Of a stretch of DNA of 64,000 nt, positions 13,606 to 63,600 are shown in pieces. The position numbers and the translations under genes are program-made. How positions within the stretch are numbered: position 1 is the stretch's first letter; each line of letters starts with the position of its first letter. The notes under the pieces are model-generated. The model did not search any database. It was not told the origin of the DNA and saw only the letters and a program-made list of their open reading frames with translations. Location: contig NEEC01000012.1 of NCBI GenBank assembly GCA_002189035.1, positions 1,116,001 to 1,180,000 of the forward strand, written 5' to 3'. The stretch comes from Utricularia gibba. Lineage: Eukaryota; Plantae; Magnoliophyta.

Positions 13606-14283
<678 letters not shown>

Positions 14284-15859: not shown

Positions 15860-18396
15860 CACTCACATTTATATTTTTTTAGAACTATCTTAAATGGTTT
15901 TTGTATCCTTTTGATTTCAGTTTTCCTATGTTTTTAAATGAATTTTATATCTTTCATATTATTTTTATCTTTTTGGAGATAAAAAGTTATTGTAATTTTT
16001 CATTACAATTTTGGCTTAATTTAAAGGAAATTCAAGCTTACCTTTAAATGGACAAATATTTAGTCTATTTGAATGAATATTTAATCAAGATTATTATATA
16101 AGATAAGATTTAAATCTTATTGTTGTGTGTCGTTTCCTCAACAAATTTTAAATATTTTAAAACGTAAAACACTAGAAGGCGTAGTACGAGTATCAATCTC
16201 AGGGAGTTGTTTTTCGTGAAAAGTGTTTGCAAGCAACTTCTACAAAATGTCACGGTTTTGTAAAAGGGGTTTTTAAGATGCAGAAATGAAAGATACAACC
16301 TAAGTAATGGGCTTTGACTACGGGACGCAGTTCCTGGAAATAAGACTCCATCTCCTTCCTTTGTCCGTCCTTGCCTCGGTTTTCACTGATTTCTTCCGAA
16401 TAGCTGATTATAGGAGCAAGGAATAGCCTAATCTCCCTTACACTCTGATTGACAAGGAGGCACGGGAATAGCCTCATGTGATTCCCCTTTGGACGATTAG
16501 GAAGACAAGAGGATTGCCTTCGATTGCCTTCAAAACCGAATTGTGCGCGTATGCCCAGCTATTGCCAATGGCCAGTGGCAGGTCTGAGGTCACAACCTGT
16601 CCACTATCGCGGTACCTAGGCCACAAACAATCTGCTACTTCCCTCAAACCAGTAGGGTTGGAGTTGGTGCTCTTCACCTTAATCTTCACCAAAATCCGCA
16701 AGAAGTGGCCTGCTACTCATGGATCTTGACTAAGAGTCGTTATAGAAAGACTGCAACAAGATGCGTGGAAGTATGCGGAATCCGAATTGAATTCAGTGAA
16801 GAACCGAGTGTATTGCTCAGGACTTGGAAGGAAATTTCATCTACTTCCCAGAAACTAAAGGTTTTTAGCCCGAAAGGGCCATGAAAACAGAAACGAAAAG
16901 AAACTAAGTGTTCTTCCTCCTTGAGAGGAGGAAGAACTCAAAAGTTCTAAGTACAAGAGAAAAATGTTCAAAAGTCCTAAACTAAGTGCTCCAAGTGCCT
17001 TTTATATGACTTCCCACGTGCATTAACTCCTTTGGGTCCCCTTCCCATCATTCCTTCTGTCTTGCGTGCGCCAACAGACTTTCTTTGCGTGCAAGTTTGC
17101 GCCCAATAATTGCTGCAGACTCTGACATGCCGTAAGTCATGGGCCTTGACCAGTGTCAGTCTTCCGCCCACAATCATTCCAACTTGCGTACAAGGCACGA
17201 AAACTCAGAGTCTGACCACCTGCAATACTCCTGCAACACTCCTGACAGTCTCCTGACATGCCTCGGTCAAAGTGTGAGAAAAAAATGCATAAAATATACA
17301 CAAAATGGGAAAATAGGAATTTTCTAGTAAAAATCAAATACTTAATAATAAGACTCATAATTGGGCGATTTAGCACTTAATTAATACATAATAATACCTA
17401 AATAATAACTAGAAAATGACAAATCACACTTATTTATGTCTTATCCTAGAAGATTCGGATAGAAGATTTAATATGAGTGCATCAAAAAAGCTTAATAAAT
17501 CTCTACCATTATATAAAAACTTGAGTACCAAATTGTTGAAAGAGACCAAAGACCTGAGTCTTAAAGTCAGTCTTGAAGTCAAGGATCAAGTCTTGCACCT
17601 TTGAATTCATTTTACATCTTTTTTCATCTATTCTCATGTGTTAAAGTGAAACAAGTGCATGTTAGACCTTGTGGCTAAGGATCTATGATGATTAGCTAGA
17701 ACCCTAGAAATATCTTAAGGTGAAGCATGGTGGTGTGGGTCTAGAATTCTTAGTAAAATTCATCATTGTTCCTTAGTTCTTGTTTCTAACATTCCATGGG
17801 TAGACCTAAGGAGGGGAGCAAGTAACTTTGCAACTAAGAAGCTTGGTTTAGAGATAAACCAACAAATCAAGGCGGGCATAGTAGGTGTTAGTCCGGAGTA
17901 AAACCAGTAGAATCAGGTAGACCTAGTTCTATATACTTTACATACGAGTCAACCTAATTGCAAGGTTGGTAATGATATTTGAGACTAGATTAGCCGAAAA
18001 TTTAACAAATAACCTGAGTAGACCTAGGTGATTTGAGGTTATGAGTATAGGAACATGGTATGTTAACTTGCATATTTTAGCACCATCTGCAAACCCTTAA
18101 GGCATCCTCGTATTATTCTGAATTAGAACCAGTTGTTGTTACCTTCTGCATTGAAACTTGACTTCATTTATTGAACTTACTTGCCATTGCTATTCCGAGC
18201 TTAGACTAAAATCATTGTATTCCAAATTATGCATCTATTAAAATACTTAGCAAGCACAAGCTTTTTGTGATCGACCCTGAATTTCACTATACACTTTGTA
18301 TTTAATTTGTATTTTGTGAAGATTAGGGATTATAAATTTATTTGATACGGGGATCTGCTTTATTTGTAATGACATTGCTCAAATTTCCATTTATCA
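15860..18396 (+). mobile_element. Athila-type LTR (family A-like) interrupted by a family B solo LTR
   Basis: 17430-18396 shares gtagacctag motifs and the terminus gattagggattataaatttatttgatacgg...tttatca with 58953-60329. Left boundary approximate. Confidence 0.6.
16121..17428 (-). mobile_element. Solo LTR (Ty3/gypsy family B), 1308 bp
   Basis: On the minus strand it reads TGTGAT...CAACA, with perfect 5-bp TSD CTTAT at 16116-16120 and 17429-17433. Homologous to 19581-20150 and 36780-37845. Confidence 0.85.
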
Positions 18397-19580
18397 GTAT
18401 GACTATAACCCCATACATGTTTTGTAGGGACGTTTGCGAATGAGGGCATGGATGGGATCGATGTGGTGGATGGTGAGGATGGGGCAGCCGAGTGATGGTG
18501 GTATCACGCACACGCGCAAGATGCACGTCACAGGACGCCTTGCGGGTGAAGTGTGCTGTTGCAATCACGCTAGTAGCATGTGGAGATGCTTTGCCTGACT
18601 AGGGTGTCGTGATGGATTGTCACACTGGGCCATATCCTCAGAGTGGGTTAACGCCATGAGACTAGGATAATCTGTTTAAGGTAGGGATAAATTGGTGTTT
18701 TCATCTTTTACAGCAGTCACTATAGATGAAAGTGTAGTCCCAACCGACCCTGCCCGGCCCAGCTTTCATGTAGGACAATAGTAGTCGCCATGCAGTGCTT
18801 CACTTTAATAATTTGGGTAAAAATGTCTTTCATCTTGCACAATAGTAGTTGACATACAAAACTTTGTTGTTCATAATTTAGAGAAACACTATTTTTTTTC
18901 TTTTTCTTTTCCAAAAATTGTAAGATTCTCACACAATTTAAATAAATAAATAATTAATTACACAATTTTGGTAAAATCAACTTTTGACGGAATATTATAA
19001 AATTGTGTTCAACTCATTATTCTATTTATGTTTGAATTAATTGAAAAATTAAACATATTACAAAAAATAAAAATAGTTTTGAATTTAATATTTTAAATTC
19101 TATATTAAAATTTTTTAATTAGATATAAAAAATAATAAATTCAAGTTGAAGTAAATTTAACTAAGAGACGTCATGAGTGGGAAGGAGCATGTTTTCAGAG
19201 TATCCAAAACTTGCCATCCTAGAGTGAAAAAGTTTAGGAACAACTTTCATAAGGTCAATGGAATGTGAGGACTTAGAAAAGCATGTTTCATTATTTCATC
19301 TAAATTTTCAAGGTGAATGGAGGAGAAAAGATCAAGATTTTCTGTCAAAGTTATAAGCAACAGTTGAACTTTTGGACAAGGATACTTTCACCAAGGGAAA
19401 GTGAATTGTAGCTGAGGCTAACAAAGGGGAAGTAGGAGAAAAGAAAACAATGGAACCATTGGAAAATTGACAAGTGGTTGGAACCATGTCTTTCCTAAAT
19501 TGCATCGGAGAACATGGCTTCACTCAATATTTATTCAATTGTAATTTTATATGAATAATAATATATTATTTGAGACAAAG

Positions 19581-20150
19581 TGTTGAATGTTGTTTCCTCA
19601 ACAAATTTTAAATATTTAAAATGTAAAACACCAAAAAGCGTAGTACGAATATTGATCTCAGGGAGTTGTTTTTCGTGAAAAGTGCTTTGTAAGAAACTTC
19701 TACAAAATGTCATGGATTTGTAAAAGGGGGTTTTTAAGATACAGAAATAAAAGATACAACCTAAGTGATGGGCTTTAACTACGGGACGTAGTTCTTGGGA
19801 AGACGATTCCATCTCCTTTCTGCGTCCGTCCTTGCCTCGGTTTTTACTGATTTCTTCCGAATAGCTGGTTATAGGAGCAAGGAATAGCCTACTCTCCTTT
19901 ACACTCTGATTGACAAGGAGGCACGGGAATAGCCTCATGTGATTCCCCCTTGGATGATTAGGAAGACAAGAGTATTGCCTTCGATTGCCTTCAAAACCGA
20001 ATTGTGCGCGTATGCCCAACTGTTGTCAATGGCCAGTGGCAGGTCCGAGGTCATAACCTATCCACGGTCACGGTACCTAGGCCACAAACAATACACTACT
20101 TCCCTCGAACCGATAGGGTTGGAGTTGGTGTTCTTCACCTTAACATATAC
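19581..20150 (-). mobile_element. Truncated family B LTR (3' part)
   Basis: High similarity to 16121-16690; it yields the same spurious ORFs (MRLFPCLLVNQSV, MIPxWxIRKTR). Confidence 0.85.
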
Positions 20151-25408: not shown

Positions 25409-27674
25409 CCATAAATGGAAATTTCTCAATGTCATTGCAAAAATAGAAATTTTGTTATCAAATAAATTTATAATCCCTAATCTACACAAAATAAAAATTT
25501 AGAAAACTTATATAGTGAATATCGGGGTTGATTACAAAGAGCTTGTGCTTGCTAAGTCTTTTAGTAAATGCATAATTCGAAATAAAAGTTATCTTAATCT
25601 AAGCTCGGATCAACAGTGGTAAACAAGTTCGGTAAACAAGATCATGTTTCAATGCGAAAGGTAACAAGTACTTGTTTTAACTCAAAATAATACGAAGATG
25701 CCTTAAGGATCTGCAGGTGGTGTCATGCTAAGGTGCCTAATTTAATTTACCATGTTCCAACACTTACAACTTCAAATAACCCAAGTCTACCCAGATCATT
25801 CATCATATTTTCGGCTGAATTAGTCCCCATTATCATAACCCACATTGCAATTAGGTCTACCCTTATGTAAATCATATAAAACTAGGTCTACTAGGTTCTA
25901 CCCCGGACTAACACCTACTGCACCCGTCTTGATTTGTTGATCTATCTCTAAACCAAGCATCTTAGTTGTGAAACTACTTATTCCTCTCCTTAGGTCTACC
26001 CATGAATTGATAGGAACAAGAGCTAAGAAATGAACATAAATTTCATTATCAACCCTAAGCACACACCACCATATTTCACCTTAAGGCATCCCTAAGGCTT
26101 TAGCTACTCATATTTTGAAGGTAAAACATGATAACATTCACATAAAGCAACGAAAATGTCAAGAACATCGTGAAAGAGTTGGTTGCATAAACTGAAAAAC
26201 ATCAACAAATGAAAATAAAGCAGTAAGAGTTCTGGTTTCCGTATGCTACTGTTCCTGGGCCGGAACTATAGCGCTAGACTGGGCTCTGATGCTATTCTTG
26301 AGGATGAAGTTCTTCTACTCTCCTGGTTGAGTGCTCGTCGTGTTGGGGGAGAAGCCCCTCCTCGGGTTTGCCCGTCTACTCTTCCTTCTCCCTTCTCCAA
26401 AAATATCTTCATATCTTTTTACCATTTTTCAAAATCAGTCTACTATTTCTGACATCTGTACTATTCCTGGCCTAAGCCTGTAGACTATAGGCGATTGAAT
26501 AGTGCATTATGTATCCTCTTTTAATGCTGCCCATTCTTCCAAATCTTCACATGCACGAAATTCATGTCTCCTTCCTGATTTTTGAACGTTGATGCTGGAG
26601 TAGAAAAAAATGTTAATAACATGGGATGGGCTAAATCCTGTGATTTAGCCCATTAACACATAAAAAAACATTATGTCCTAAAATTTGGTAAAAATACTAA
26701 AAGATATAAGATAAACACTTAAAACATGATTCAAAAACATAATTTTCTTATTCTAATAATAGGAAAATTCGTATGTTATCACACTATGCTACAAAGACAC
26801 TAGACTTGTCCTCAAGTCCAAACTAAGACTAATAAAATCCTGTTTTCGAAAATTTTCATGATAGACATGAATGACCATGTTCAGATTTCAGATGCATGAA
26901 CCATAGGTGTACTTGTGTGCAAAATAGGTAACACTTCAACATGCATGAATAGATTATTCTTGGAGAGTGCTTTCAAAGATTAAAACAATGAATTAACATA
27001 TTCAAAGCAACCAAAAGATTGTGATTCTCAACTCGGTTTTTTCGTTTCTTGCATCTATCCCTCTCTTTTTTTTTGATATATATGAGATAGCAAATGAACA
27101 AACATTTCAAAATCAATCTAGACATAATTTCAAGACCTCTCTTAATACAAAGAGTGTTGGCCAAGTACTCTCACCTTATGAATCCAGGTCAACTTCCACT
27201 CCTCTAAACAAATTCATCCTGTCTTATTCATTCACTTCTCAACGAGTCTACACACGCTTTTCAATTGTGCGTTGCTTTTTAGACTCGGGTCTCATTGCTT
27301 TTCAAATGATGATGCTTTTCTTGACCCTTATTCTCTCTTTTTTTTTCATCAGCAATCCTTGTAGCAATGAAATATATCAACTCATGGAAACAAATCTAGA
27401 TTGTACTCTTTAGGTTCCTCTAATCATGCTTGCACTCACATAACAAAATAATTGGGATTCATGCTCACAAGGTTTCAGAAGGCTTCAAACAAAGCTCGTG
27501 CATCCTAATCATCACAAGGCTATCATATCCCATGATTGAATTATTCGAAACGGGATTTGGAGTATCAAGTAAAAACACATTCTACAAAAACAAACAAATA
27601 ACTCCTAGCATAGAATTAGAGACATAAATGGTCCAAAGTGGATGGACTCAAATTGTGTGTAAGAAAACCTGAAT
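25409..27674 (-). mobile_element. 3' end of an Athila-type element: 3' LTR (25409-26781, ~1373 bp) plus 3' non-coding internal region
   Basis: The LTR starts TGATAAC at 26781 and is homologous to 30164-31541 and 58953-60329. The upstream motif ttagtcttag..gacttgaggacaagtc is shared with 44809-44838. Confidence 0.8.
26782..26798 (-). other. tRNA-Asp 5'-end-like 17-mer at the PPT position
   Basis: Minus-strand gtctttgtagcatagtg vs tRNA-Asp(GUC) nt 1-17 GTCGTTGTAGTATAGTG (recalled): 15/17, directly abutting TGATAAC. Confidence 0.7.
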
Positions 27675-29649: not shown

Positions 29650-32600
29650 CTCTGCTTTTATTTGTGAATTTCATCTAAAATAACTTATTTAAATATTGAA
29701 GTACCGGTTAACATCTTGTCAAATGCTGTGTAGTTTAGCTTATTCATAAGATTTACGGTTGAAAGCCCATTTTTTCTTTTACAAGTCAATTTGGACTTAT
29801 TGTTACTACATTTATTTTTTAATAGAATATTTGTAGGATATTTATTCAGTATATAAATATTTTGATGGAGAAATATTTTTAGACCCATGGAAACTAGAGA
29901 AATTTCCATCCAATCAATCAGTAGAAAAGAATCCTTTCAGATAGACCTTTGTGGCTCCATTGATTCCTAGATCAACATGCTAAGAGAAACTCCTATTGAA
30001 GTTCACTATCAATCTTTAGGTAATTATTATGAGATTTATGGAGGAAATTTGAGAGTAAGAAGAATACACCAATAAATTCTCTTTTAAACATTGGAGACAT
30101 TGTTGGTCACATTTTTCTTTATCAAGAAGTTGAAGAAGCCATGTGGGGTTTTGTGAGGCCTCTTGATAACACATATTTCATTAGTGTTTTAAGTTATAAA
30201 ATTGATATGTTTAATGATAAAATTAGGTTTTTTAATTATAATTTTTAATATTTTTTTAATTATAGTATTATTTGTTTTTTTATGCATAATATAAATTAAA
30301 TCCATGATTTAGTCTATATTTTGATTTCTAATATTCTTCCGAGTGTTAGCAGCAGCATTATGAATCACATTTAGCTAGTTTATGAGAATAATTCAAAGGG
30401 GCACAAGACATAAGGAGGAGACATTATTAATATTCAGCCCTCTATAGTCTTCAGGTTCAGGTCAGAAATAGTACAGATGTGAAGAATAGTGGATTGACTT
30501 TGGAAAATGAAAAAAATTTTATGTGAAGATATTTTAGGAGAGGGGAGGAGGAATATAATACAACCAGACCCTAAGAGGGGGAGGAAGAATACGAAAGAGG
30601 GAAGATGAAGGTGATTTCTCCAGAAGTAAGACTAAAGACTTGAAGAACAGCATTAGAGACTCAATTCAGCACTACTCTATCGAGCAGTGAACAGTAATAG
30701 ATCGCGAACAAAACACTCTACTTTATCTTTAGTTGCTGGATGTTTCGTTACTTTGACTGTTTTTTTACAATGTCTTTGTTATTCTCTTCAATTTATCTTA
30801 ATGATATTATGCTTTATCTTCTATACATGAATAGCTAAGCCTTAGGGAATGTCTTAAGGAATAGAATGGTGGTGTGAATTTAGGGTTAATAATGAAATTT
30901 ACATTTCTTTCTTGTTTCTATTATTCCATGGGTAGACCTAAGGAGGGGAACGATTAACTTCGCAACTAAGATGTTTGATTTAGAGGTAGATCAACAAATT
31001 AAGACATGAGCAGTTGGTATTAGTTCAAGGTAAAACCAGTAGAATCGGGTAGACCTAGTTTGATATATACTTTGCATGCGAATAGATCAATTTACGGGAT
31101 AGGTGATGATATTGAGGACTATATTTGCCAAAAACATGATGAATAACTTGGGTAGACCTAAATTATTTGGAGTTGTGAATATAGGAACATGGTAGATTAA
31201 GTTAGACATTTTAGCACCACATCACCTGCACACACTTAAGGCATTTTAGTATTACTTTGAATTAGAACCAGTATTTGTTACCTTTAGCATTGAGACGTGA
31301 TTGTTTTTTTTTTATTGAACTTGCTTACCACTTTTAGTCCGAGCTTAGATTAAGAACTACCATTATTCCGAATACTACATCTACTGAAACACTTAATAAG
31401 CACAAGCTCCTTGTGATAGACCTTCAAATTCCACTATACATTTTGTGTTTAATTTTTATTTTATAAGGATTAGGGCTTATAAATTTATTTGATACGAAGA
31501 TTTCTATTTTTGTAACGACATTAGAAAATTTTCATTTGTTACCTTTTCATGTATGTGATACCTAACTAGGCAAAGGAATCCTACGATGCTAGCAAGAATT
31601 AAGATCTCTCACGACATTTATTTATGGAGTTTTGCAATTTCAACGTATCAAGAAAAGCAAGTTTTTAAACAAAAAAATAAATTTTCGAATCATACTCAGC
31701 AAAATATGGAGATATTTATGACATAAAAGAATAACCCGAAATTTCACAATAAAATGATAGACATAACTACCATGAAACTACTTATTAGCGAGTTAATAGA
31801 TAATTTGTAATGGCATGCATCCCACATCCTGGACCAAGCAAATTCTCTAAGTTTTGAACAAGTTAAGGGTTTAGACCCTAAACAAGTTACCTCTGCATCC
31901 AATTCATTAGGATTTGATGATCTTTTAACAAAACTGTTAGTTCAATATATTGAAGAAAAAATTTTTATTTTGGAAACAACATCATCATCAAAATGTAAAT
32001 GTAGTATAAAGTTATGTCAATCTATTGAAATATGCTATGCCACAAGTGAATGTTTTCAAAAATAAATAAATCCGAATTGTAGGATGATTGACCCCCCCTT
32101 AATTCAGTTCGTATGAATCTTTTTCGGGAGCTGAGGTAAATGCATCACAAGCACATCAATTAGTAGATTTGGGAGGATTAATGTCGAGGACAAATGATTA
32201 ATTCACCCATCCAAATCAAATTAGGGGAAAGACTTTCTTTAACAAAGCATATCATTTATTGCCATACGGATGTCGAATGCTAAATATCATATGTGTAGAA
32301 TTGTTCAAGTATAGTTATACACTGAACCGATTTGGTACTATCCATGCTATTTCTTTGAGTCCTCCCGATGCAATGATACTAAAAAGAATTTTTATCCAAA
32401 CATTAAAGGGTCATAATGTATATATTGGCATCTGGGTGAATGGCCACCCAAAATCAAGACAATGGAATTAAATTTATGAATAAAATCATAAATCAAGAAA
32501 ATCTATCGTATTCAAACTCCTTTTACTTGAGTGCATCTTGATTCTATGGACTATGCTATGGCCCAAGGGATCTATAAGAAAAGTGACCACTTTTTTACCT
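29650..32600 (-). mobile_element. Degraded LINE (L1) relic: ORF1 (DUF4283/zinc knuckle-like) then ORF2 endonuclease, interrupted by a solo LTR
   Basis: Minus-strand peptides PFNVWIKIL..LKEIA and TFTCG (~32030-32450), then VDLGING...FFSTD*L (~29900-29990), in ORF1-to-ORF2 order. Confidence 0.4.
30164..31541 (+). mobile_element. Athila-type solo LTR (family A), ~1378 bp
   Basis: TGATAACAC start and degenerate tttgtta end. Flanks cctct (30159-30163) and ccttt (31542-31546) are a 4/5 TSD. Confidence 0.8.
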
Positions 32601-37845: not shown

Positions 37846-38805
37846 CAGTCTTCCGAAAATCAAGGGAATGTCAGCTTGGGAAGATCCAATTTGTTGCCAT
37901 CTGATGATTTATTTCTCTCTTTTTCTGCCACTTGTGCGTCTCTATAAAAACTCAGGAAAGGTGGAGAGAGAAGCAAATCTCCCTTTGGAGACTCACGAAC
38001 ACATTTTCTGGGGAGAAGGTTTTCTAGGGAGGAAGAAGGAAGACAAATAGGATCGAAGCTGAAGTTCAAGATTATTTTCTGTCTTCGAAGAATATTACTC
38101 TTAGCTAAGAGTAGCTAGTGACGTTTTTCAGTTTTTGTTGACACTTCACATTACTTGCTTGTTTGCTTTCTGGTATTTGACTGTGAAATGAGCACATTGT
38201 GGGTGATGTTTTCTTTTCCACTTTCGTTTACCTTAAGCATGAGTGGCTAAGTACTTAGGGAGGTGCCTTGGGGTAAAAAGGGGAGAAACATGTTAATCAA
38301 CCTTCAGATCTAAACACCCATGAGTCACGCCACTTCCTTAACAAACCAGGATAGATCGAGGATGGGGAAGTAGTGAAACCCAACTTACCAACCCTAATTA
38401 GAGGTAGACCAAAGATTAGGGGGAAAAACAAGAATCCAGGAAGACCTAGATCTTGTGAGTTAGTTGTATGATTTGTGGTTTGTGTGAGTTTGTTTAGTGA
38501 TGAGCATACATCCCCTAGGAGTCCCAAGACATCACTCATTCCATTCCAGAAACTACCGAATCCAAACTTGTTACTTTTCTTTACTGTATTTCGTTGTAGT
38601 CCTAACTTAGTCCTAGTTAAGATCAATTTTACCAACGTGACACTGATTTCATGCTTTGGCTAATCACTTGACAAGCACCTGCTCTTCGTGTTCGACTCTA
38701 ATCACTATGCTCATAATTGTTTTATGCTTGAATGTGGGTTAGGTTATAAATTTATTTGATAGGAAAATTTGCATTTAACGACATTGCATAATTTTTCGTT
38801 TATCA
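37846..38805 (+). mobile_element. Athila-type LTR 3' part (family A2)
   Basis: TATA-like ctctataaaa at ~37940 and terminus ggttataaatttatttgata...gtttatca. Inverted homolog at 1-650. Confidence 0.75.
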
Positions 38806-39039: not shown

Positions 39040-40620
39040 ATTTAATAATACTTTTTATTTTTTATTAATTCGAATTAAAATTTTAAATCTATTTAATTAT
39101 GTTAGAATTGATCGTGGGTATAGCAATAGTTGAGATACAAGTCAAGTATAATTATACTATTGATTATGATAAAGCATGGTTTGGTGTGCAATATGCATTT
39201 GAACTTGTACATGGATGTTGGAAATCTTCAATGAATAAATTACCACGTCATATGTTAGCTGTTCAAATGACGAATCCCGGTACAATTGTAGAGTGGTCTT
39301 TTTATGATACACAATCATGACCTAATCATAAAATATTCCGCTAATGTGTTTTGGGCTTTTTAGCCTTGCCTTGATGCGTATCAACTATGTGCTCTGGTGA
39401 TTCCTATTGATGCAACACATCTTTATGTAACGTAAGGTTTTTAATTTTAGAATTTTGATTTATATATTTTATTATCTCTAATTTACAATTTTATGCATAG
39501 GTATGATTATAAATTGTTATTCGTTGTTTGTTGTGATTCTGGTGAACATATAATACCAGTAGCATATGCTATTGTGGTTGATGAAAACATAGAATCGTAT
39601 TCTTGGTTTATAGAGAAGCTAGATGCTTTCATTATTCGATGTCAAACATGTACAATCATCTCAGATCGTCATGCTCGTATATTAAGTATTGTTAGTTCTA
39701 TGTAGGCATTTACAGATGGCAAGCTTATTCATCGTTGGTGCCTTCAACATTTTGTTTCCAATTTTTACAAGTCTGTAAAAATAAAGGCTTAAAGGAGCAT
39801 TTATATGTGATTGGTGCTACACCAAATAAGGTAAAATTCCAAGGATACATGAAGAAAATCTTTACTCATCACGCGGCAGCACAATGGCTGAATCATTGTG
39901 AGATTTTGAATAATACTGACTAATAGATGCTTGCATTTGACAATGGCAAGTGTCACGGATATTTGATTGCAAATCAGGTAGAATGCATGAATAGAGTTTT
40001 TAAAAAAATTCAAAGATATCCAATTTGCAGCATTGCATATTCTACTTTCTCTTGGACACAAACAATGTTTATTACAAGGCATAAGAGATCACTCATTTAA
40101 ATGTTAATAGAGAGGTATGTTATTTCAAATTATTTTGTATTGAAATTCATAAATGATACATAATGTATTTGATAATAAAACACATTTCACGGACAAGAAA
40201 AATGCATGGTTTCATAAACAACAACAAAAAGTATGGCAGTTTCAGTTATACTATTGGGATCTTTATCGTCTTGTTGGTTATGTTTATGTTGTTTCGTGAA
40301 AACAAGCAAAATGGAATCGAAAAATAGTTTATTTACAATCACAAACATGCACATGTGCAAAATGGTTGATTCACCCACTTCCTTGTGCTCATGCTCTAAA
40401 ATGTGGGAAAATATGCCTATTGGCATTAAACCAAATGGTTATTCATGAATCGACTTTGGATTTGTTGCAGATGCAGTATGCAGATAAGATATTACAAGAT
40501 TTAGGTCAAGAAGACAGATGGCCTCAATCAATTTGGTACTTGTATCATGACAAACATTGTGAGAAACATGGAAGAGGTCATCCTCATCGCACTAGAATTC
40601 CAAATGAAATGGATGCCTGA
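39040..40620 (+). pseudogene. MuDR/MULE transposase pseudogene (copy 3, different family, with introns)
   Basis: YDKAW, KLPRHMLAVQMTNPGT, IPIDATHLY, IIPVAYAIVVDENIESYSWF, TIISDRHA, HRWCLQHFVSNF and TCKMVDSPTSL. Confidence 0.85.
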
Positions 40621-43065: not shown

Positions 43066-44710
43066 ATGATGCCAGCGACACGAAGCGCAAAGAAGGCCAC
43101 AAAGGAGAAGTCTGGCCAGAAAAAGATGAGAAAGGAGCAAGCGAAGGAAAGAACAGGAGATGCTGAAGAATCCACCGCTGTTGCTCCGACCCAGGAAGAA
43201 GTGGTTCAGCCTACCGCTGATCCCTCAAACAGCAGAGGTGGGAGAGCCCTCTACACGGAAAAAGCAGAAGGAACCATCCTCCAAATTGGAACACACCAGT
43301 CTGCATCAACGATTGAAGGGCATGCATGCGACTTACAAGAAGAGAAAAGCTCCAGTGGAAGAACCACCTGCAGAGCCGTAGGTCTCGCCTAAGAAACAGG
43401 GGAAGAAACATGGAAAGAAAATGCAGAAGGCACCACTGGAGGAACCTATGCCTGAGAAAGAATCTGCTGCACCGGAAGGACACACGCTGTCCACCACGGA
43501 GAAAAATGCAGAAATTTCCAGAAACTAAGAAGCAGCAAAGGAAGAGCCTAAGGCTGAAAATAAAATTCTGGAAATAAAAATATAACGGGACGTGCATAGG
43601 AAATGGACGAAAGGGGTGTGCAGCCACTAGTCCGAGGTCAGAAAGAGTAGGGAACTCCACCTGCAGAAACTGTTGTGAGCACAACCAAAGAGGAGCAGGG
43701 AGAGATAGAGAAGGTAAAGAAATTCCTCCCAAAATTAGTCCCTATGTTCATGAATGCAGGGAAATTTGTAATGGAAAGGGAGCGGTTTCAAAGACAAATG
43801 ACCGGAAAGGGAATCCCTTACTTCAAGCATCATGCAAACATGTTGAATGAAAAGTACCTGAAGTTCGAAATAGCAGAACATATGGATCGGAATGGAGAGG
43901 TAAAAGGTATTACCCTGCCGTCATATTGATTTCGAAATTCTTGTTGAATTGAACATAGTAGACAAGGTTTACACCATGTTTGAGAATTCTGACTTCATCA
44001 TTTTATTTGAGTTAAAACTCCCTGCTTATGTGGAACTGTCCTACGAATCTGCCTCCACATTTACTTACAAAATTCCAGAAACTGTTTTAGAGCCTACTGT
44101 TGTTTCCTTTTGTTTGATGTGCGCTGAATTTTTGTTTTCATTGGCTGAGTGGAATGTTGCCCTTGGTTTTTGTTCAAAACACCAAGTAGATTCGCATAAT
44201 TTTGCTGCTTCTTTATTCGATTATCCAGTAGACTTTGATGCTGAAGAATTTTATGGAATTTTGACTAATCAGCATGTCATTGAATTTAAGGCAAAAGGAA
44301 CAAAGGGTGAAAGGGTGAGCAAAGATATTAAAAGAGTATGTGCGAACTCAATAAGTAGTGAAAGGGTGAGCAAAGATATTAAAAGAGCATGTGCGAACTC
44401 AATAAGTAGTGAAAGGGTGAGCAAAGATAAACTAATCCGGAGGAGTATGAAGGAGCCTAGTGTTATAAGGTGTGAGTGCTTGGCCAACACTCTGATGAAG
44501 AAAAGGGGCAGTCACATTATGGCTGGATTAGTCTGGAACAAGCTGCCCCTTCACTACCCAAAAAAAAAAGAAAGGAAAAGAAAAAAAAAGGAGAAGAAAA
44601 AAATTGAGTTGGCAACCGTGATCTTAAGTGACTTTGGAGGGATCAATTCTATAAGGTATTATCTTCGAAAACACTCCTCAAGAGGAATCTACTCATTCAC
44701 ATTTGAGTGA
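43066..44710 (+). pseudogene. Athila accessory (ORF-1/env-like) ORF, frameshifted
   Basis: Lys/Glu/Ala/Pro-rich N-terminus, then AYVELSYESASTF...VSFCLMCAEFLFSLAEWNVALG, resembling the ATHILA ORF-1/plant-transposon-protein domain. Confidence 0.65.
44309..44429 (+). repeat. 51-bp in-frame tandem repeat (~2.4 copies)
   Basis: gaaagggtgagcaaagata at 44309, 44360 and 44411; the unit encodes ERVSKDIKRxCANSISS. Confidence 0.9.
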
Positions 44711-44841
44711 TCAAATGACATGCTCACTTGCATTTCTGTAGCTCTTGCACCGAAATTTAGTCTTAGTTTTTATGTTCATCACTGATGCTAAAGGAATCGG
44801 TTTTCTGTTAGTCTTAGGTAGGACTTGAGAACAAGTCTGGT

Positions 44842-44858
44842 GTCGTTGTAGCATAGTG
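44842..44858 (+). other. tRNA-Asp 5'-end-like 17-mer at the PPT position
   Basis: gtcgttgtagcatagtg vs tRNA-Asp(GUC) nt 1-17 GTCGTTGTAGTATAGTG (recalled): 16/17, directly abutting TGATAAC at 44859. Confidence 0.75.
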
Positions 44859-46354
44859 TGATAACACACAAATTTTCATGTTTTAGGATATGAAAAATCA
44901 TAAATTTTTAATTATGTTTAAGTGTTAATTTCATAGTTTTAAGTATTTTTATTTGATAAGGGAAAATATGATTGTTGGTGTATTAGTGGGCTAAATCAAA
45001 GGATTTAGCCCACCCCATGTCTAACCCGATTTCGGAATCTAGCAGCAACCCGAAAGTCAAGTAAGAAATCTAGGTGTCATGCAAGTCACCAGGCTGCAGG
45101 GGGCAATGAGTACACTGTTACGGTGGCAGTCTGCAAGTCAGGGCCATGAGCAGCAGATTTGTTAAAGAATGTACTTGCCTTGGAGGCGAGAGAAAGATGA
45201 GGAGGAGAGAGAGTCACAAAAAAAGAGGGGGGGAAACAAGCAGCATTTTCAGAACACACACGAGGGGTTTTCTCCCCCAACTCGAACACGAAGAATAGTG
45301 AAGGAGAAGGGGAATCGAGTAAACCTAGTTCTAGATGCTTTGCATGCGGGTAGACCTAATTGCAATGTTGGTGATGATATGGGGGACTAGCTTAATCGAA
45401 AATATGATGAATGATCTAGATAGACTTATGCTATTTGAAGTTATGAGTATAGGAACATGGTAAATTAAATTAGGCATCTTAGTGTCATTTTGAGTTAAAA
45501 CCAATACATGTTACCTTAGCGTTAAGACTTGATGTTGTTTACTTATTTTTTTTACTGAACATACTTGCCATTGCTAGTCCAAGTTTAAACTAAGGCTTAC
45601 CATTACTTTGAATTCTGCATCTGCTGAAATACATGACAAGTACAAGCTCCTTGTGATCGACCCCGAATTCCGCTGTACACTGTTTTTAATTTGTATTTTG
45701 TGATGGTTAGGGACTATAAATTTATTTGATACGGAAATTTGGTTTTAGTGCAACGACATGCTAAAATTACCGTTTATATATAGAAGTACATTCCAGCTAT
45801 TCTTTTTTTTTAATTCCTACGTTTTTCAAGATCAAATATTTATTTTTTAAAGATGATAATTTTATTTTATGTGATATCTTACCATGCCCATGCTTGGTCA
45901 ATGCTGCTTTATGACAATCTCGATGAGTCGTTGAGACTCCCTGACATTTGGTCAAGATAGTCAAACAGTCTAGATGAGTCATCAAGATTGTTCATTTTCT
46001 AGATGACTTATCGAGAATGAATCCTATTTCTCCAATTAATTGTAAAAGTAGCCTATATTTCGCTTTTCCCGTGCCTGGATGGACTGTATTGTTGAAGAAA
46101 TGTACAAGCCAATTGTCTCAATTATCTCTCAAACTGTACATCCAGCATTTCACACTTTTTTTTTCTAGGAACTAGCTGCTGATATGTTTAAGTGCTTCCA
46201 GGCTAGAGCCTAAGACAGCAGAGTAAAGCCGGTTTGCTATAGATAAATAATGAATTATATTGTTCGGCCCATAACCCCATATGAAGTATATGTTGTTAAA
46301 AGTTTATATAAAAGCATATAATATAAAAGTATATTATACTTGCCTTATCATGCC

Positions 46355-54600: not shown

Positions 54601-56161
54601 TCTTAGAAGCTGACCATCATTACCGATTTCTACTAATGGTTCTCTATTTTCTATATTTCGAGCAGCACCATTCTCTAACAATTGATCTTCATCCTGCACA
54701 GGTAAAAGGGAGTTAGAAGCTGAATTTAAATGTAGCTTGATTACCTGATTTTTCTCAACAACAAGGATGTCATCAATGGTCTGATCCTTATAAAATCTAG
54801 CATCTGTAGAACTGAAAACCTTCTTTTTTCAATGCCCCAAAGCCTACATCCCATCTGATCTTCTCCACAGCCAAGCAATATACACAATATTGTTCTTTCA
54901 TCCAATGTCTATCTATTTTCTTTCAGAATATGAGCATAGGCTCTACACCCAAATACCTTGGTTTCCTTCCTATCCAGATTTCTTAAGGAATGTAAAACTT
55001 CAAAGGTGTTTTTGGAGATCTGTTTGATAAAAAACATGTGGTTTTCAAAGCTTCTCCCTCAAAAAATTTAGGCAGCTTAGCAGTCCTCAACATGCATCTT
55101 ACTTTGTTCATAAACCTTTCTCCATTTGCATTATATACTGGAGTCTTTAGTGTTGTTATTTTCTTGATTCCTTCAGTTTTGCTGTAGTTTTCAAACTTAG
55201 TTGAACAATATTCATCACCGTTATGAGACTTGAATATTTTTAGTCTTTTGTTTGTTTGTCTTTCGAGCAGATCTTGAAGCTCTCTGAAGTGCTGAGATAC
55301 ATCACTTTTTTTTTCCATTAATGTAACCCAAGACTTTATTGAAGCATCATCAATGAAAGTGACATGAAATCTTTTTTCCCCTACTAATGCAACTTCAACT
55401 AGGCCTCTCACGTCAAAAACATCACTTTAACAGTTCTTCACTTTTCTTAAAAACATTTTTAGCTCCTATTCTATAATCTTTCCCTGCTATGCAATTTTCA
55501 CATATGATTTTAGGAGGTATCTCTTTTTCAATTAGATTATGCTGTTCTAGAAATCTCATTCTTTGCTATAGAGGTGTCCTAGTCTCTTTTGCCACAGAAT
55601 ATGACTAGTTTCTATGTAGCTAGTGAGATTCAAATCAGATGGATCTAACTTAACTGCTATTCTATACGAGGTTCCATTTAGCTCTCCTTTGGCCACAACT
55701 GTGGATGCTTTGACTAGTTTTCATATGTTATTTCCAAAGGACCTGATATATCCTGCTTTATCTAGGTGATTTACTAACATCAAAGTTAATCTTATTGAAA
55801 TAAATGGTCATCTGAGTGATAAGGAAGAATGAAGAGATAAGGCTGATTGGAGTAATAAGGAGGCTGACCATATTATGTTGGAATGTGCTGATCATCTAAT
55901 GATTCATGCTATCCCTCCTATACACGATGAAGTTGAAAGATGCCATCTCTATCCAAGAAGATGAGGGTTACTTAATGCAAAGATCACAACGGCACCAACA
56001 ATTAGGAGATTATACTTAGTCTTCTCCAATATTTTAGGAAATAGTTTAGGACCCTTAACTAACGTTAACCATCTTTTTCTATTTAAGTTGTATCATTGTA
56101 CGCTCCTGGTGTGAAGAAATCAATTTGCTTCTTATCCGGTTGTCATCCATCGTCTTCCTAT

Positions 56162-56173
56162 TGGTATCAGAGC
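56162..56173 (+). other. Primer binding site (tRNA-iMet)
   Basis: TGGTATCAGAGC immediately after the 5' LTR. Confidence 0.9.
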
Positions 56174-58952
56174 AAGCGGCTGTCATCCTTCAGCCGTCCT
56201 TTTCTCTTTCCTCTCACATTCACGCTTCCGCACATCCTTCCTTCCCTCCACCATGGCAACTGGAAATGCTATTAATGTGTCAAACTTCATCACCGTCAAA
56301 CTAACCAGCAGCAATTACCCGCTCTGGAAAGAAATGGCTATTGGGCTTGCAGATAGCCAAGGTCTCTCCGGCCATCTAACCGGTGAGACAACACCACCAC
56401 CAGAATTTGATCTCCAACCAGGAGTGCAGGATTCATCTACACCAGCAAACCCATCTACAGAATTCATAAAGTGGAAACAATCAGACCGTCTCTTGCGTAG
56501 CTGGCTCTTAGGTACAATTTTTGAAGAATCATGGCCGCTGGTTATCGGTTGTGAAACCGCCGCCAATCTTTGGTCTGCTCTTCGAGATGCATATGCCAAA
56601 AAATCTGAGGAGCGTCATTATACCGTGAGGTATCAATTCGCTCAAAACCGAAAACGCGCAGATCAAAACCTGGATGAATATCTCCGTAAATTTAAGTCCA
56701 TCTGTGACCAATTAGCTGCTATTGAAGACCCAGTCGCTGAAGATGAGAAGGTTTATTTCCTTCTCACAAGTCTTGGATCTGGCTACGAGGCGTTCACCAC
56801 TTCCATGCTCAAATATCCACGTCCCTCGTTTAGGGATTTAATCTCACAACTGCAAAGTTTTGAGATGCGAAAACAAATCAATGAAGACATTGAACGGCAG
56901 TACACCTCACTCTCTTCCCCTATGGCATATCAAACCCAATACAAGAGTGCACCGTCAACAGCTCACTTTACCTCTGACGGTCGTGGGTTTCAAGCACAAC
57001 GCAGCCAATTCCCTCAACAACAACAACAACAACCTCTTGCAATGACTCATCAACAGCCTCGCACTCAATCTCGCCAAGGACGTGCACCCCCACCCCCACC
57101 AGGAAAACGTCAGATGACACCATTTGAAAGAGATCTCTATAAAAATGAAGTCTGTCAAATCTGCAATGTGACAGGTCACATTGCCAAAATCTGCTGGAAA
57201 CTCCCAGGTCCCCAAGCTGAGCCAAAGACTGATGCAATTCCACAAACCCTGGCAAACCTGACTCTCGACAACTCCCTCACCGAAACTGAGTGGATTGCAG
57301 ACACTGGTGCTACCAATCACATGGCAGGTACAAAAGAAGTTTTTATTGATCTTCAATCTTATACAGGTCATGATGGAGTTAAAGTTGGTGATGGCACATC
57401 ACTACCCATTACGGGTATCGGTACATCTAAACTCACACAGGGAACATCCACTATGCCATTAAAAAATGTATTATTTGTACCAAAACTAACAAAAAATCTC
57501 CTTTCTGTTGCACAGATGACAACACAAGAACCTGTTAATTGTGAGTTTACTAATTTTGGTTTTTTTGTCAAGGATCGAGCAACAGGTCTTCCCAAGTTGA
57601 CCGGCCATCGCACGGGTGATTTATATGTAGTGAATCATTCACATGAAGCCTTCTTTTCATATCGTTTTCAGTCTTCCACACCAGACATATGGCATCAACG
57701 TCTTGGGCACCCCCAGGATTCCATGGTGCCAATTCTTAAAAATAAAGGCTTGATTACAGTTATTAAACCAAATCAGCCTTCCTTCTGTGATAGTTGTCAA
57801 TTTGGAAAAATGTCAGAACTTCCATTTGCTGAGTCCGAAAATATTACTACTATTCCTTTTGAAAAACTTTACTGTGATCTTTGGGGCCCTTCACCTGTCA
57901 TTTCTCGAAATGGGTTTCGTTATTATGCTTGTTTCGTTGATGCATATTCACACTTTATGTGGTTTTTCCCATTACGAAAAAAAGTGATTTTGTGGATACC
58001 TTTCTTCAATTTGAAACCTATATAGCTCGACAGTTTGACAAGACCATTAAAGTGCTTCAAACCGACAATGGTGGAGAATTTGTCAATGAATGTCTCAAAT
58101 CTCATTTTTTAAAAACCGGTATGATTCATCAACTCTCTTGTCCGTACACTCATGAACAGATGGGAATGGTAGAGCGACGACATAGAACGATCAGAGAACA
58201 CGGAATGACCCTACTCTTCCATGGCGGATTACCACTATCCCTGTGGGTTGAAGCCTTTGCTACAGCCGTTCATCTTCAAAATAGACTACCATCTCCTTCA
58301 CTCAAAAGGGAGTCTCCTTACTCAATCCTATATAATCGCAGCCCCGATTATTCAATATTACGTGTTTTTGGTTCGAAATGCTTTCCGTATTTATGGGATA
58401 GTAGGAAGAATAAATTTTCTCCAAAAACTGCATTATGTGTTTTTATTGGATATAGTGAAAGCCACAAAGGATACAAATGTTATGATCCACAAACAAAAAA
58501 AATACACATTTCAAGACATGTCATTTTTTATGAAAAATCGTTTCCCTTTAAGCATCTTGTAGTACCGACATGCTGTCCCCTGAAAAGGTCTCTAAACTGT
58601 TTGCACTGTGGATGCAGGAAACACTAGGTTCAAAGACTTCTCAAGAACGTGCTCCTACACTAGAACACAACGTTGCAACCACCGGAGAGTTATCACCGAT
58701 AACTTCATCAATGACTTCTACTCTACCTACAATAATTCAGACTGAATCGGTGGCCCTTCATCCCGTTGATTCAGAGCCGAGTCAGAATGATAATTCAGAA
58801 TGATGAGCATCAACACCAGACATAGAGTCTCCAACTGGGTTAACAAATGACACCATTACTTCGAGCGCCACCAGCCATGATTGCTTGAGTGACCCATGTG
58901 AGGTGGGGACACTCTCCCTTACACCCGTCAGAGTAGAAGATGGAGTCCATAT

Positions 58953-60329
58953 TTATAACACAAAATAGCTATATTTTATTATGATTTGAGTTAGATAAAT
59001 ATGGGTTTTAATGCTTTAGTGGTGTTTATGTTAATCTTATTTGATTATGTTAAAAAGTGGACTAAATCCTTTGATTTAGTCCACAACTTTTGTTACTAAT
59101 GTTTTAGTAAGTTTAGCAGGGAAATCAGCAGAAAATCAGACGTGCAAACATGTGGAACAAGTGAAGAAGGGCGCAAAATCCGGAGAAGAACAAAGAGCAA
59201 TGTTTTGCTGCTACCGTAGTCTGCAAGTTCAGAACAGGAACAGTACTGACAGTCAGAAACAATGCAATGGAGTGAAGCAAAAGAAAAGGAAATTAATTTG
59301 AAAAAAGAAGGAGAGCGTAAAGAAGCGAGGAGCGAGGGGGACGCAAAGGGGGGTCTTCTTCTCCAACAGGAAAAACACCAACCAGAAGGGGGAAGGGAGG
59401 CCTCCATCATCAAGAACAGCACCAGAGCCCAGTCTAGCGCTACTGCTCCGGGCTGTGAACAGTAGATAGCGGGCGGAAAAACATTATCTATTTGCTTTCC
59501 GTTTTTCTGAACATTTCAAGTTTCTGAATTTGAATTGTTACAATGTTTCTGCCATTTTGGCCAGCTTATGTGAATGAAATTGTGTTTTATTTCCAAAGCA
59601 TGAGTGACTAGAGTCTTAGGGATGCCTTAAGGTGAAGGGGTGTGGTGTGTGCTTAGGGTTAATGATGAAATTTATGTGTATTCCTTAACTCTTGTTTCTA
59701 GCAAACCATGGGTAGACCTAATGAGGGAAACAAGTAGTTTCACAATTTAGAAGCTTGGTATAGAAGTAGACCAAAAAACCAAGATGGGAGCAGTCGGTGT
59801 TAGTCTAGAATAGAACCAGTAGAACCGGGTAGACCTAGTTGTATATACCTTGCATGCGGGTAGACCTAATTGCAATGTTGGTTATGATATTGGGGACTAG
59901 CTTAAGCGAAAAAAAAAGATGAATGACCTGGGTAGACCTAGGTTATTCGAAGTTGTGAGTGTAGGAAGATAGCAAATTAAGTTAGGAACCTTAGTATGGC
60001 ACCACCCGTAGATCCTTAAGGCGTCCTCGTATTAGTCTGAGTCAAAACCAGTACCTGTTACCTTAGCGTAGAAACCTGATATTGCTTATCTACCTTGTTT
60101 ACTGAACTTGTTTACCTCTGTTGGTCCGAGCTTAGACTAAGACTTCCTGTTATCTCGAATTATGCATTTACTAAAACACTTAGCAAGCACAAGCTCTTAG
60201 TGATCGACCCCGACATCCACTATACAAGTTTTCCAAATTTGTATTTTGTGTAGATTAGGGATTATAAATTTATTTGATACGGATTTTCTATTTTTATTAC
60301 AACGATATTAGGAAAATTTCCGTTTATCA
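58953..60329 (+). mobile_element. Athila-type solo LTR (family A, ~1377 bp) inserted in the copia integrase-RT linker
   Basis: (t)ttataacac...gtttatca; flanks ccata and ccatg; homologous to 30164-31541 and 25409-26781. Confidence 0.85.
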
Positions 60330-60516
60330 CCATGACACGCTTCCCCCCTCCTATGACATGTCCTCTCTCTCTCCTGCATCATCTAATGATGTTCAAGACT
60401 TAGATGGAGATGATCGTATCAGCTCACCACCAAGTGCAACAAAGCAGCAACCTCCCGCTCAACCTGCTGGTGTCTTACCCCTACGTGTTGGGACTAATGA
60501 AAACTACCCACTATCA

Positions 60517-60662
60517 GGAGATGCACCAGATAATGAGAATAATGAAGGCGACAGGGAGGAGTGCACGCCTACGGATCCAGGACCTCAAGGCGATGCACCA
60601 GATAATGAGAATAATGAAGGCGACAGGGAGGAGTGCTCACCTACGGCTCCACTACCTCAAGG
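60517..60662 (+). repeat. 72-bp in-frame tandem duplication
   Basis: GDAPDNENNEGDREEC(T/S)PT encoded twice, starting at 60517 and 60589. Confidence 0.9.
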
Positions 60663-63600
60663 TACAACAAACTATGATAGTGTGTTTGATACCTCGAATT
60701 TCCCTGTGCAGAGAACTCATCCGATGACAACAAGGTCACGAAGTGGGATTTTCAAAGCAAACCCGAAATATGCTCTCCATGTTGCACAACATTATTCCAT
60801 ACCGCCTGAACCACAAAATGTTCGAGACGCTCTTCACCATCCTGGTTGGAAAAAGGCTATGATTGAAGAGTTAGAGGCATTGCATCACAATGACACATGG
60901 ACATTAGTCCCTCGGGAAGAAGCTCAACATATTCTAGGGTGCAAGTGGGTGTTCAAAGCTAAACTCAAATCCGACGGCACACTTGATCGCCTAAAGGCCC
61001 GCCTCGTAGCAAAAGGGTATGACTAGGTAAGATGGTCTTGACTATATAGAAACCTTTTCGCCAGTCATTAAACCAGGTACTATTCGCCTTATCATTTCAA
61101 TTGCAATTATCAACCATTGGGAAATTAGACAACTTGATGTGAAAAATGACTTTTTGCACAGTACAATTCATGAGGATATCTATATGGAGCAACCTCCAGG
61201 TATGAAAAATGCTCACCTTTCTTCTCATGTTTGCAAATTGAATAAGGCATTATATGGTCTTAAGCAAGCCCCACGAGCTTGGTTTGATCGTTTTAGTTCT
61301 TTTCTTCTATATCTTGGTTTCTTTTGCAGTCTGGTAGATCCCTCATTGTTTATTGCACACTCTGGAAAGGATACTCTGATCCTACTTCTTTATGTAGATG
61401 ATATCATTATGACGGGGACAACATCTGAATTGATACATAAGCTCATCAAGACATTGTCTATAGAGTTTGCTATGAAAGATTTAGGAGTTTTGCATCACTT
61501 TCTTGGGATTCAAGTCACACACACTGATGATGGTCTACATCTCTCACAAACTCACTATGGGTTATCTATCTTCGACAGGTTTGGACTAAGAGATTGCAAA
61601 CCATCCACTACTCCTCAAGTTTCTAAACTAAAAGACGTTGGCTCTTCAAGATTCCTCCCTGATCCAACATCATTTCGATCTCTAGTTGGAGCTCTACAAT
61701 ATCTTACTTTTACAAGACCTGACATTGCATACAGCGTGAACTATGTCTCCCAGTTTATGCAATTACCAGCAGACCATCACATGTCATTGGCTACTCGTAT
61801 TCTGAGATATGTGAAGAACACCCTGGACCTTGGAATCTCCTACTATAAGAACTCATCCATGCAACTTGAAGCCTATTCTAATGCAGATTGGGCAACTTGC
61901 CCTCTTACTCGACGATCCGTTACTGGATACTGTGTTCTTCTAGGGATAAATCCGATCTCACGGAGCTCAAAAAAACAGCACACCGTATCACGCTCAAGCA
62001 CAGAAGCATAATATCGAGCCATGGCACACACAGCTGCTGAGGTGACATGGTTACAATTTGCCTGGAAAGATTTGAAGGTCAAGCTAAAGGGAACTCCCAC
62101 TCTACACTGTGATAACATGAGTGCCTTGCATCTTACTGTAAACCCAGTCTTCCACTCTCGGAGTAAGCATGTTGAAATCGACTATCATTTTGTACGGGAG
62201 AGAGTAGCATTGGGTTATTTGGTGACTAGGCACATTCCAACTCAGCACCAAGTTGCTGATTTATTTACAAAGAGAATCTCCTCACAACGGCTGATATTTC
62301 TTAGAGGCAAACTTGGCCTCAACCCACGGCCTAGTTTGAGAGAGGGTATTGAAATAAATGATCAGCGAAGTGATAAGGAAGAATGAAGAGATAAGGCTGA
62401 TTGGAGTAATAAGGAGGCTGACCATATTATGTTGGAATGTGCTAATCACCTAATGATTCATGCTATCCCTCCTATACACGATGAAGTTGAAAAATGCCAT
62501 CTCTATCCAAGAAGATGAGGGTTACTTAATGCAAAGATCCCAACGGCACCAACAATTAGGAGATTATACTCAGTCTTCTCCAATATTTTAGGAAATAGTT
62601 TAGGACCCTTAACTAACGTTAACCATCTTTTTCTATTTAAGTTGTATCATTGTATGCTCCTGGTGTGAAGAAATCAATTTGCTTCTTATCCGGTTTTCAT
62701 CCATTGTCTTCCTATAAATCTCAATTCAGGTACATGTTAGACATCATCAAGTTTCAATTGGATCCAACTAGATCACCTATTCCAACAATATCTTGCTATG
62801 GTTGAGTTTCCCATTCGAACGGGTTGCGTGAAAACTTGCTGCTGAGTCAATCATCCAATTTGAAAAGCTACCCTTGGTACATGTTTCCGCTACCATTAGT
62901 GTTGGTAATTCTTCTTCATTTATGACTAAGGCTGAATTTCCAGGTTCAGTTTTCTGTTGATTTTTGGCTGCATCACTACCTTACACTATCCTAAGCCAAA
63001 ACTTACATTGTTTCTTGATGTGCCCAATCTTCTTGTAATAAAAACATATTCTAGTTTCCTTCTATCCACCTGAACAAGTACCTTTGTGATGTTCCTGAGC
63101 ATTATTTTTATCTTACCAAACTTTCTTATTTCCGTAATGTTCTTTATCACCTTTTTTTCTTATCTTTTTTATCAGTAACAAACAGAGTACCCTAAGTGTC
63201 TTGCCTAGATCATGTTCTTCTTAATTCTTCCTATAGTAGAGCATCTGAAACATAATCAAGTGTGAGATTTCTATGAGCTGAATGCGTAAGTGTGATCACC
63301 AAAACTTCTTAGTTAGTTGACAATTTTTGTAGTAACTTAATAGCTTTTATTTTATCATCTAGATTCATTCTTATAGCTGCCGTGTCACCTATTTTTTTCT
63401 TAAAACTTACTCAAGTGATCACTCATAGAATCTCTATCTTTATTTTTAAGGTCTATTAGCTTTTAATCCAATACTATTTTATTCATTGTACTTGATACAC
63501 GAAATGTATCTTCAATCTTTTTCCACAGCACCACTACATTATCATCTTCTTTAAACTTGTTGTGAAGTGAGTTCTCTATGGATAGTTGCATATATGCTGC

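Follow-up and report, generated by a model that had tools for sequence, protein, structure and literature searches.

To our knowledge, plus-strand priming from a purine-rich, RNase H-resistant tract beside U3 is treated as universal for LTR retroelements. Annotation tools rely on a polypurine tract (PPT) beside U3. Members of the Athila lineage carry a primer-binding site (PBS) that is complementary to tRNA-Asp at its 3' end (PMC1142308, PMC2844528, ATHILAfinder preprint); for FIDEL, whose authors describe its PBS as complementary to the tRNA-Asp 3' end, a G-rich PPT core is reported as well (PMC2844528). In yeast Ty3 (and Ty1) the PBS is bipartite, and a second tRNA-related sequence lies towards the genome's 3' end, not far from the PPT/U3 boundary (PMC5371799). 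Half-tRNA priming is described for Drosophila copia and for the plant Osser, Bryco and Bianca lineages (PMC6317226, PMC5371799), and a reverse-transcribed tRNA has been found beside the 3' end of a provirus, in this case a whole tRNA-Gly that lies outside the provirus and is associated with deletions (PMC12220202).

The canonical 3' junction of the Athila lineage was reconstructed from five relatives (L002, L003, L128, L129 and L132), which come from four other plant assemblies, lie on contigs encoding relatives of the copy B open reading frame (ORF) described below and each possess a tRNA-Asp-type PBS. In the plan they share, a hairpin whose loop is 4 nt long stands 27-28 nt ahead of the LTR, and the end of this interval is a G-rich purine core. 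The last 13 nt before the LTR are the core GTGTGGGGGAATT or a close variant of it: the core is identical in the 3' junctions of L002, L003, L128 and L129, and 1-2 letters of a 15-nt match differ in L132 and in a second, reverse-strand junction of L129. According to the ATHILAfinder preprint, this junction is conserved in 97% of Brassicaceae ATHILA. The distance from hairpin loop to LTR is 27 nt in L002 and L003, as it is in copies A and B of the present study, and 28 nt in L128 and L129.

Covariation across 12 modules supports the hairpin: 90.6% of cells were paired and 7 of 8 pairs had changed on both sides, a degree of pairing reached by 0 of 500 shuffles, with slid controls at 21-42%. The support comes from this covariation and not from folding energy, since thermodynamic folding alone did not single the hairpin out (z -0.3 to -0.8). 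An earlier interpretation of the window made from its letters alone (hereafter the sequence-only reading) had listed the stem-loop as a shared feature of the motif discussed below. It is present in both copies, as stated, but it is not specific to the motif; judged by its covariation, the hairpin upstream of the PPT is a lineage-wide Athila structural element tied to the PPT and not a novelty of the window copies. As a cis-element for annotation it should be useful. We rejected the idea that the hairpin is conserved merely through encoding 'LEDK', because the stem changes are compensatory and not conservative at the amino-acid level. In two chromovirus contigs (L126, 1257-1304; L127, 1074-1121) the hairpin has the same sequence, which codes for ..RLEDK.. 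immediately behind the Chromo domain and is followed by a purine run and then TGATAGG at the same 27-nt spacing; the common 'LEDK' end of chromoviral polyproteins may overlap a cis-acting hairpin. The five relatives also contain in their interior a second module of hairpin and G-rich purines, situated 1-1.5 kb upstream of that at the 3' end and resembling a central PPT (L002 14780, L003 9348, L128 11764, L129 11357, L132 11266), which is absent from the window copies.

The window, by which we mean the whole 64-kb stretch of DNA that was analysed, holds five copies of one LTR family, with 65-83% pairwise identity over the 3' 700 nt of the LTR. Copy A comprises a 3' LTR at 25411-26781 (minus strand, 1371 nt), homologous to the four other LTR copies with homology ending at 25411, and a remaining internal region at 26799-27265 (minus strand), which is ~59-64% identical to 44378-44841 of copy B. 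Copy B comprises a 920-nt 3' LTR at 44859-45778 (plus strand) and, upstream of it, the remnant of a post-integrase Athila ORF at 43874-44707 (plus strand; ATHILA ORF-1-like part 43874-44380, open stretch 43904-44707). The remaining three copies, all on the plus strand, are solo LTRs at 30164-31545 and 58953-60329 and a 5'-truncated LTR at 17688-18397. The LTRs are 920-1382 nt long, begin TGATAAC and finish ..TTTATCA, and so have the TGATA...TATCA-type Athila termini, of which TATCA is described in the ATHILAfinder preprint.

Although the ORF at 43904-44707 had no direct Pfam match, a full HMMER search found 31 relatives carrying PF03078 ('ATHILA ORF-1'), and in one of them (P0025) this domain lies downstream of RNase H and integrase within one polypeptide. 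Through these relatives, copy B can be assigned an ATHILA ORF-1 domain following integrase, the arrangement that characterizes the Athila lineage; copy A lacks the remnant. Reverse tblastn (E down to 4e-18) placed the sole Athila-protein homology of the window at 43874-44380, on the plus strand only. Since this homology lies on the same strand as the copy B motif and just upstream of it, copy B is a 3' end in sense orientation and its LTR a true 3' LTR. Going by homology, copies A and B are fragments of Athila-lineage Ty3/gypsy elements, and both junctions are true 3' LTR junctions. No pol homology of the Athila clade was found anywhere in the window, and a search that allowed up to 2 mismatches found no tRNA-Asp PBS there. 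Each copy is a 3' fragment, and neither retains a 5' LTR-internal junction; their gag-pol, 5' LTR and PBS are missing rather than broken.

Several other features surround these copies. The solo LTR at 58953 is nested in a Ty1/copia element (55793-62715; 369-bp LTRs 96.7% identical; Pfam gag, integrase and RT), whose polyprotein frame is broken in at least three places, once by the nested Athila-type LTR and two or more times by a change of frame or a stop. Direct repeats at 16098-16682 and 19558-20143, 89% identical and 3.4 kb apart, lie around the truncated Athila-type LTR and are probably the LTRs of a small non-autonomous element. A MULE transposase remnant with MULE and SWIM domains (39451-40617, plus strand) sits in the interval from the solo LTR at 30164 to copy B. 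At 54986-55426 (minus strand) there is a lone fragment of an integrase core. The window also contains an inverted repeat (1-645 and 37946-38598; 90% identical, 37 kb apart) and an exon-like ORF with a polyprenyl synthetase domain (13606-14283, plus strand), probably a host gene. Within the LTR U3, a second hairpin with a 10-12-bp stem and a 3-4-nt loop occurs at ~26625-26648 (minus strand), ~44988-45011 (plus) and ~59057-59084 (plus); it is 93% conserved between copies A and B, and the solo LTR at 58953 keeps the pairing with both arms changed (GGGC/GCCC to GGAC/GTCC).

At the copy A junction, the minus strand reads through the hairpin of the Athila-lineage PPT module (26802-26819; 7-bp stem, 4-nt loop), three bases and a 17-mer (26782-26798) into the LTR, which begins TGATAAC at 26781. 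At the copy B junction, the plus strand reads through the corresponding hairpin (44821-44838) and a 17-mer (44842-44858) into an LTR that begins TGATAAC at 44859. The hairpins are identical at 17/18 positions (5' arm GGACTTG, 4-nt loop, 3' arm CAAGTCT). When the letters were re-read on the minus strand (26835..26775) and the plus strand (44808..44865), both junctions proved to be as the sequence-only reading had described them, with 17-mer, hairpin and TGATAAC, a copy A 17-mer 16/17 identical to the copy at 44842 (a single differing position) and a C at position 11 common to both. The same reading had noted that the solo LTRs at 30164 and 58953 lack the motif; both indeed begin at the same LTR terminus with no motif upstream, which places the 17-mer in the internal region and not in the LTR, again in agreement with that reading.

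Our comparator for the 17-mer was a published plant tRNA-Asp sequence, represented by the primer 'tRNA-Asp_1F' (GTCGTTGTAGTATAGTGG; PMC6521008), whose letters are also the start of a 23-24-nt soybean small RNA (PMC3519564). When the acceptor 3' strand is worked out from FIDEL's tRNA-Asp PBS (PMC2844528), nucleotides 1-7 of this comparator all pair with it (7/7, one of them G.U). Against tRNA-Asp nt 1-17, the copy B 17-mer matches at 16/17 positions, the sole mismatch being C for T at position 11, and the copy A 17-mer, which also has C at position 11, matches at 15/17, the score claimed in the sequence-only reading. Identity to the tRNA stops at nt 17, exactly at the first LTR base. At the level of the letters, this match shows that the 17-mer derives from the tRNA-Asp 5' end.

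Set against the canonical junction, the window copies retain both the hairpin and its precise 27-nt spacing, and the purine core alone is exchanged for tRNA-like letters. Over the 17 nt adjoining the LTR, the window copies agree with the tRNA at 15-16/17 positions; six canonical Athila junctions reach 6-7/17, and the chromovirus contig L126 reaches 5/17. Purines in the slot run for no more than 2 nt in the window copies, versus 5-10 nt in the comparison junctions (5-7 nt in the Athila-lineage relatives), and a scan of the window for the G-rich core with up to 3 mismatches allowed gave nothing but one spurious site. Aligned on hairpin and LTR terminus, the junctions show the tRNA-like 17-mer occupying the PPT slot exactly. 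L126 has the same upstream 22 nt, the same spacing and a TGATA start, so that only the intervening 15 nt differ from the window copies, which argues for replacement rather than slow decay. As read from this alignment, the swap is a length-preserving replacement of a primer-sized segment and not gradual decay.

The sequence-only reading had called these elements 'PPT-less', a description that holds for the slot adjoining the LTR, which has no purine run, but not for the DNA farther upstream. Copy B contains a 44-nt uninterrupted purine run at 44560-44603 (plus strand), 255 nt upstream of the LTR, and copy A has a tract with 34/38 purines at the matching place (27037-27074, minus strand). In both copies this upstream purine tract might serve as a further, internal site of plus-strand initiation. 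As the solo LTRs begin at TGATAAC, it cannot be what defines their start, and we rejected on this basis an LTR that starts at the upstream tract.

Both copies are truncated 3' fragments whose slot has no purine run, they lie just 18 kb apart in inverted orientation, and a third copy was not found in the collections searched. These features would be accounted for if one aberrant reverse-transcription event had placed tRNA letters in a single copy's PPT slot, after which normal replication of that copy could not be completed, and if both loci had descended from it at the DNA level, with no transposition, by old duplication, rearrangement or ectopic conversion between elements. We regard this history as unlikely given the results on INDEPENDENCE and inheritance. 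In local alignments of the 1 kb past the LTR ends and past the ~480-nt shared internal part, the flanks of copies A and B scored no better than shuffles (z -0.3 and -0.9), whereas element controls aligned strongly (z 55 and 99). Homology between the loci ends exactly at the LTR end and is confined to the element; with unrelated flanks, copies A and B are not a segmental duplication, and the earlier claim that they are independent insertions is upheld. Furthermore, copy B is the outgroup of the five LTRs, at 65-69% identity to all others, and the copy A LTR nests among the solo LTRs, being nearer to these (at most 83%, with the one at 58953) than to copy B, with which its identity is 65%. This pattern of relationships is hard to reconcile with local duplication of one copy.

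Copies A and B therefore lie on opposite sides of the deepest split among the window LTRs. This comparison of five LTRs bears out the claim that the motif survived in diverged sublineages. As judged from these two sequences, the simplest account of a motif present on both sides of the split, C at position 11 included, is that it goes back to a founder early in the family's history. The sequence-only reading had also held that the motif is more conserved than neighbouring internal DNA and that the internal DNA upstream and the LTR have diverged, and both statements agree with our measurements: over the 59 nt of the junction, copies A and B are identical at 53/59 positions, versus 59% in the rest of the shared internal DNA (Fisher 1e-6) and 65% in the aligned LTR, and no other 59-nt stretch anywhere in the A-B alignment is as well conserved. 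Because the junction includes the integrase attachment site and the hairpin, high conservation is expected for any LTR end and is, alone, no proof of a functional 17-mer. That elements of this kind were still transposing, as the sequence-only reading proposed, is plausible from two truncated, decayed copies, and on the same two copies inheritance of the motif through transposition is likely. No further family members were found by a word-index protein search with the 268-aa ORF, a 167-aa piece and a 139-aa solo-LTR open stretch, or when metagenome contigs were scanned for exact matches to the 20-nt junction. A second metagenome scan returned two chromovirus contigs only, and a loose hairpin-plus-LTR pattern gave only chance phage matches in viral contigs.

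The 17-mer might instead be a decayed polypurine tract that resembles tRNA-Asp by accident, and canonical junctions do share 6-7/17 positions with the tRNA 5' end. To raise the match from 7/17 to 16/17, however, some nine particular substitutions would be required, with no change relative to L126 in the 22 nt upstream or at the start of the LTR. The analytic chance of a match of at least 16/17 is 3e-9, and even at up to 3 mismatches a scan of the whole window found the tRNA 17-mer at these two sites only, against 0.05 expected. The tRNA matched is, moreover, the lineage's own primer, and we consider accidental resemblance very improbable. Scarcely credible is a misread anatomy, in which the motif would be a PBS for a 5' tRNA half beside a reversed 5' LTR, of the kind that half-tRNA primer sites in some plant Ty1/copia lineages might suggest (PMC6317226), or the remnant of a tRNA gene or tRNA-derived SINE that was interrupted when the LTR inserted: the former was rejected on the orientation of the copy B ORF homology and the lineage-specific hairpin upstream at the exact canonical spacing, and the latter is at odds with the lack of any cloverleaf or tRNA similarity past the first 17 nt and of any tRNA gene detected in the region by ARAGORN or by Rfam, at the gathering threshold or at E up to 10.

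We favour, with a probability of roughly 0.55, an explanation in which a captured copy of tRNA-Asp nt 1-17 replaced the PPT core once, in the family ancestor, and was inherited through reverse transcription. The tRNA concerned would be the one that the Athila lineage packages as its minus-strand primer, and its copy would have replaced the G-rich core in one family, leaving the hairpin, the 27-nt spacing and the LTR terminus untouched and being passed on by later rounds of reverse transcription. The captured letters would have come from the packaged primer tRNA, through a template switch or because mispriming left a footprint that became fixed. We infer that the family kept transposing after the swap, in which case plus-strand DNA would still have begun at the first U3 base, and the swapped site would still mark, or at least allow, that start. 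Against this explanation is the fact that the copies are only two, both 3' fragments that offer no 5' LTR start or target-site duplication of their own for comparison.

Two primers can be envisaged under inheritance of a captured tRNA segment, and we give them roughly equal weight. The primer may be RNA of the element itself that survives RNase H, the cut being placed with reference to the hairpin, or it may be a 5' fragment of tRNA-Asp annealed to minus-strand DNA. The shared C at position 11 mildly suits priming by a tRNA fragment, as the minus strand would still pair there with U11 of the tRNA through a G.U wobble. The reported 5' tRNA-Asp small RNAs, at 18 nt or more, mildly count against it, since even the shortest extends one base past the motif and would have a 3' mismatch. 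In a bolder version, which we think distinctly unlikely, one host tRNA would supply both primers: a tRNA-Asp 5' fragment ending in the D-loop would prime the plus strand at the former PPT slot, its 3' end setting the first U3 base. The swap would then be the fixed footprint of the first mispriming by such a fragment, which would explain why a primer-length segment was exchanged with the spacing unchanged.

If the family did spread with a non-purine slot, all the more one that reproduces the 5' end of its own primer tRNA, the rule of purine-tract priming can be bypassed, and the conserved hairpin or tRNA fragments would be alternative determinants of the U3 boundary. The junction would also provide a concrete sequence signature for finding similar cases.

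Limited full-text literature searches did not bring up any account of a PPT slot occupied by a copy of a tRNA 5' end, and the known systems nearest to it are alike only in part. The internal-3' LTR junctions of Athila, Calypso and FIDEL type share with the window copies the TGATA...TATCA termini, the post-integrase ATHILA ORF-1-like domain and the hairpin at a fixed distance from the LTR; the window copies, in contrast, have no G-rich core, and their 17 nt are 15-16/17 the tRNA-Asp 5' end instead. The Ty3 bipartite PBS similarly involves, near the PPT/U3 boundary, the same tRNA that acts as minus-strand primer. The Ty3 site, however, is a complement of the tRNA, to which it binds as part of the RNA genome, whereas the window motif is tRNA-sense on the coding strand, is not complementary to the tRNA on genomic RNA and could pair with it only as minus-strand DNA. 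Half-tRNA priming resembles our case in that a part of the tRNA other than its 3' end would serve as primer, but the primers in those elements start the minus strand beside the 5' LTR, while the window motif lies at the plus-strand start beside the 3' LTR.

The 5' tRNA-Asp small RNAs ('miR6300'-type tRFs), reported in several plant species, have the same letters as the motif, though they are 18-24 nt long and not 17; we know of no report linking them to retrotransposon replication. The tRNA-Gly found beside a provirus is a precedent for joining reverse-transcribed tRNA to retroelement DNA, but it is not an in-place, length-preserving swap of a primer tract inherited by a family. The nearest known cases thus differ from the window copies in sense, position or primed strand, and the tRNA-like slot may represent an undescribed way of starting the second strand.
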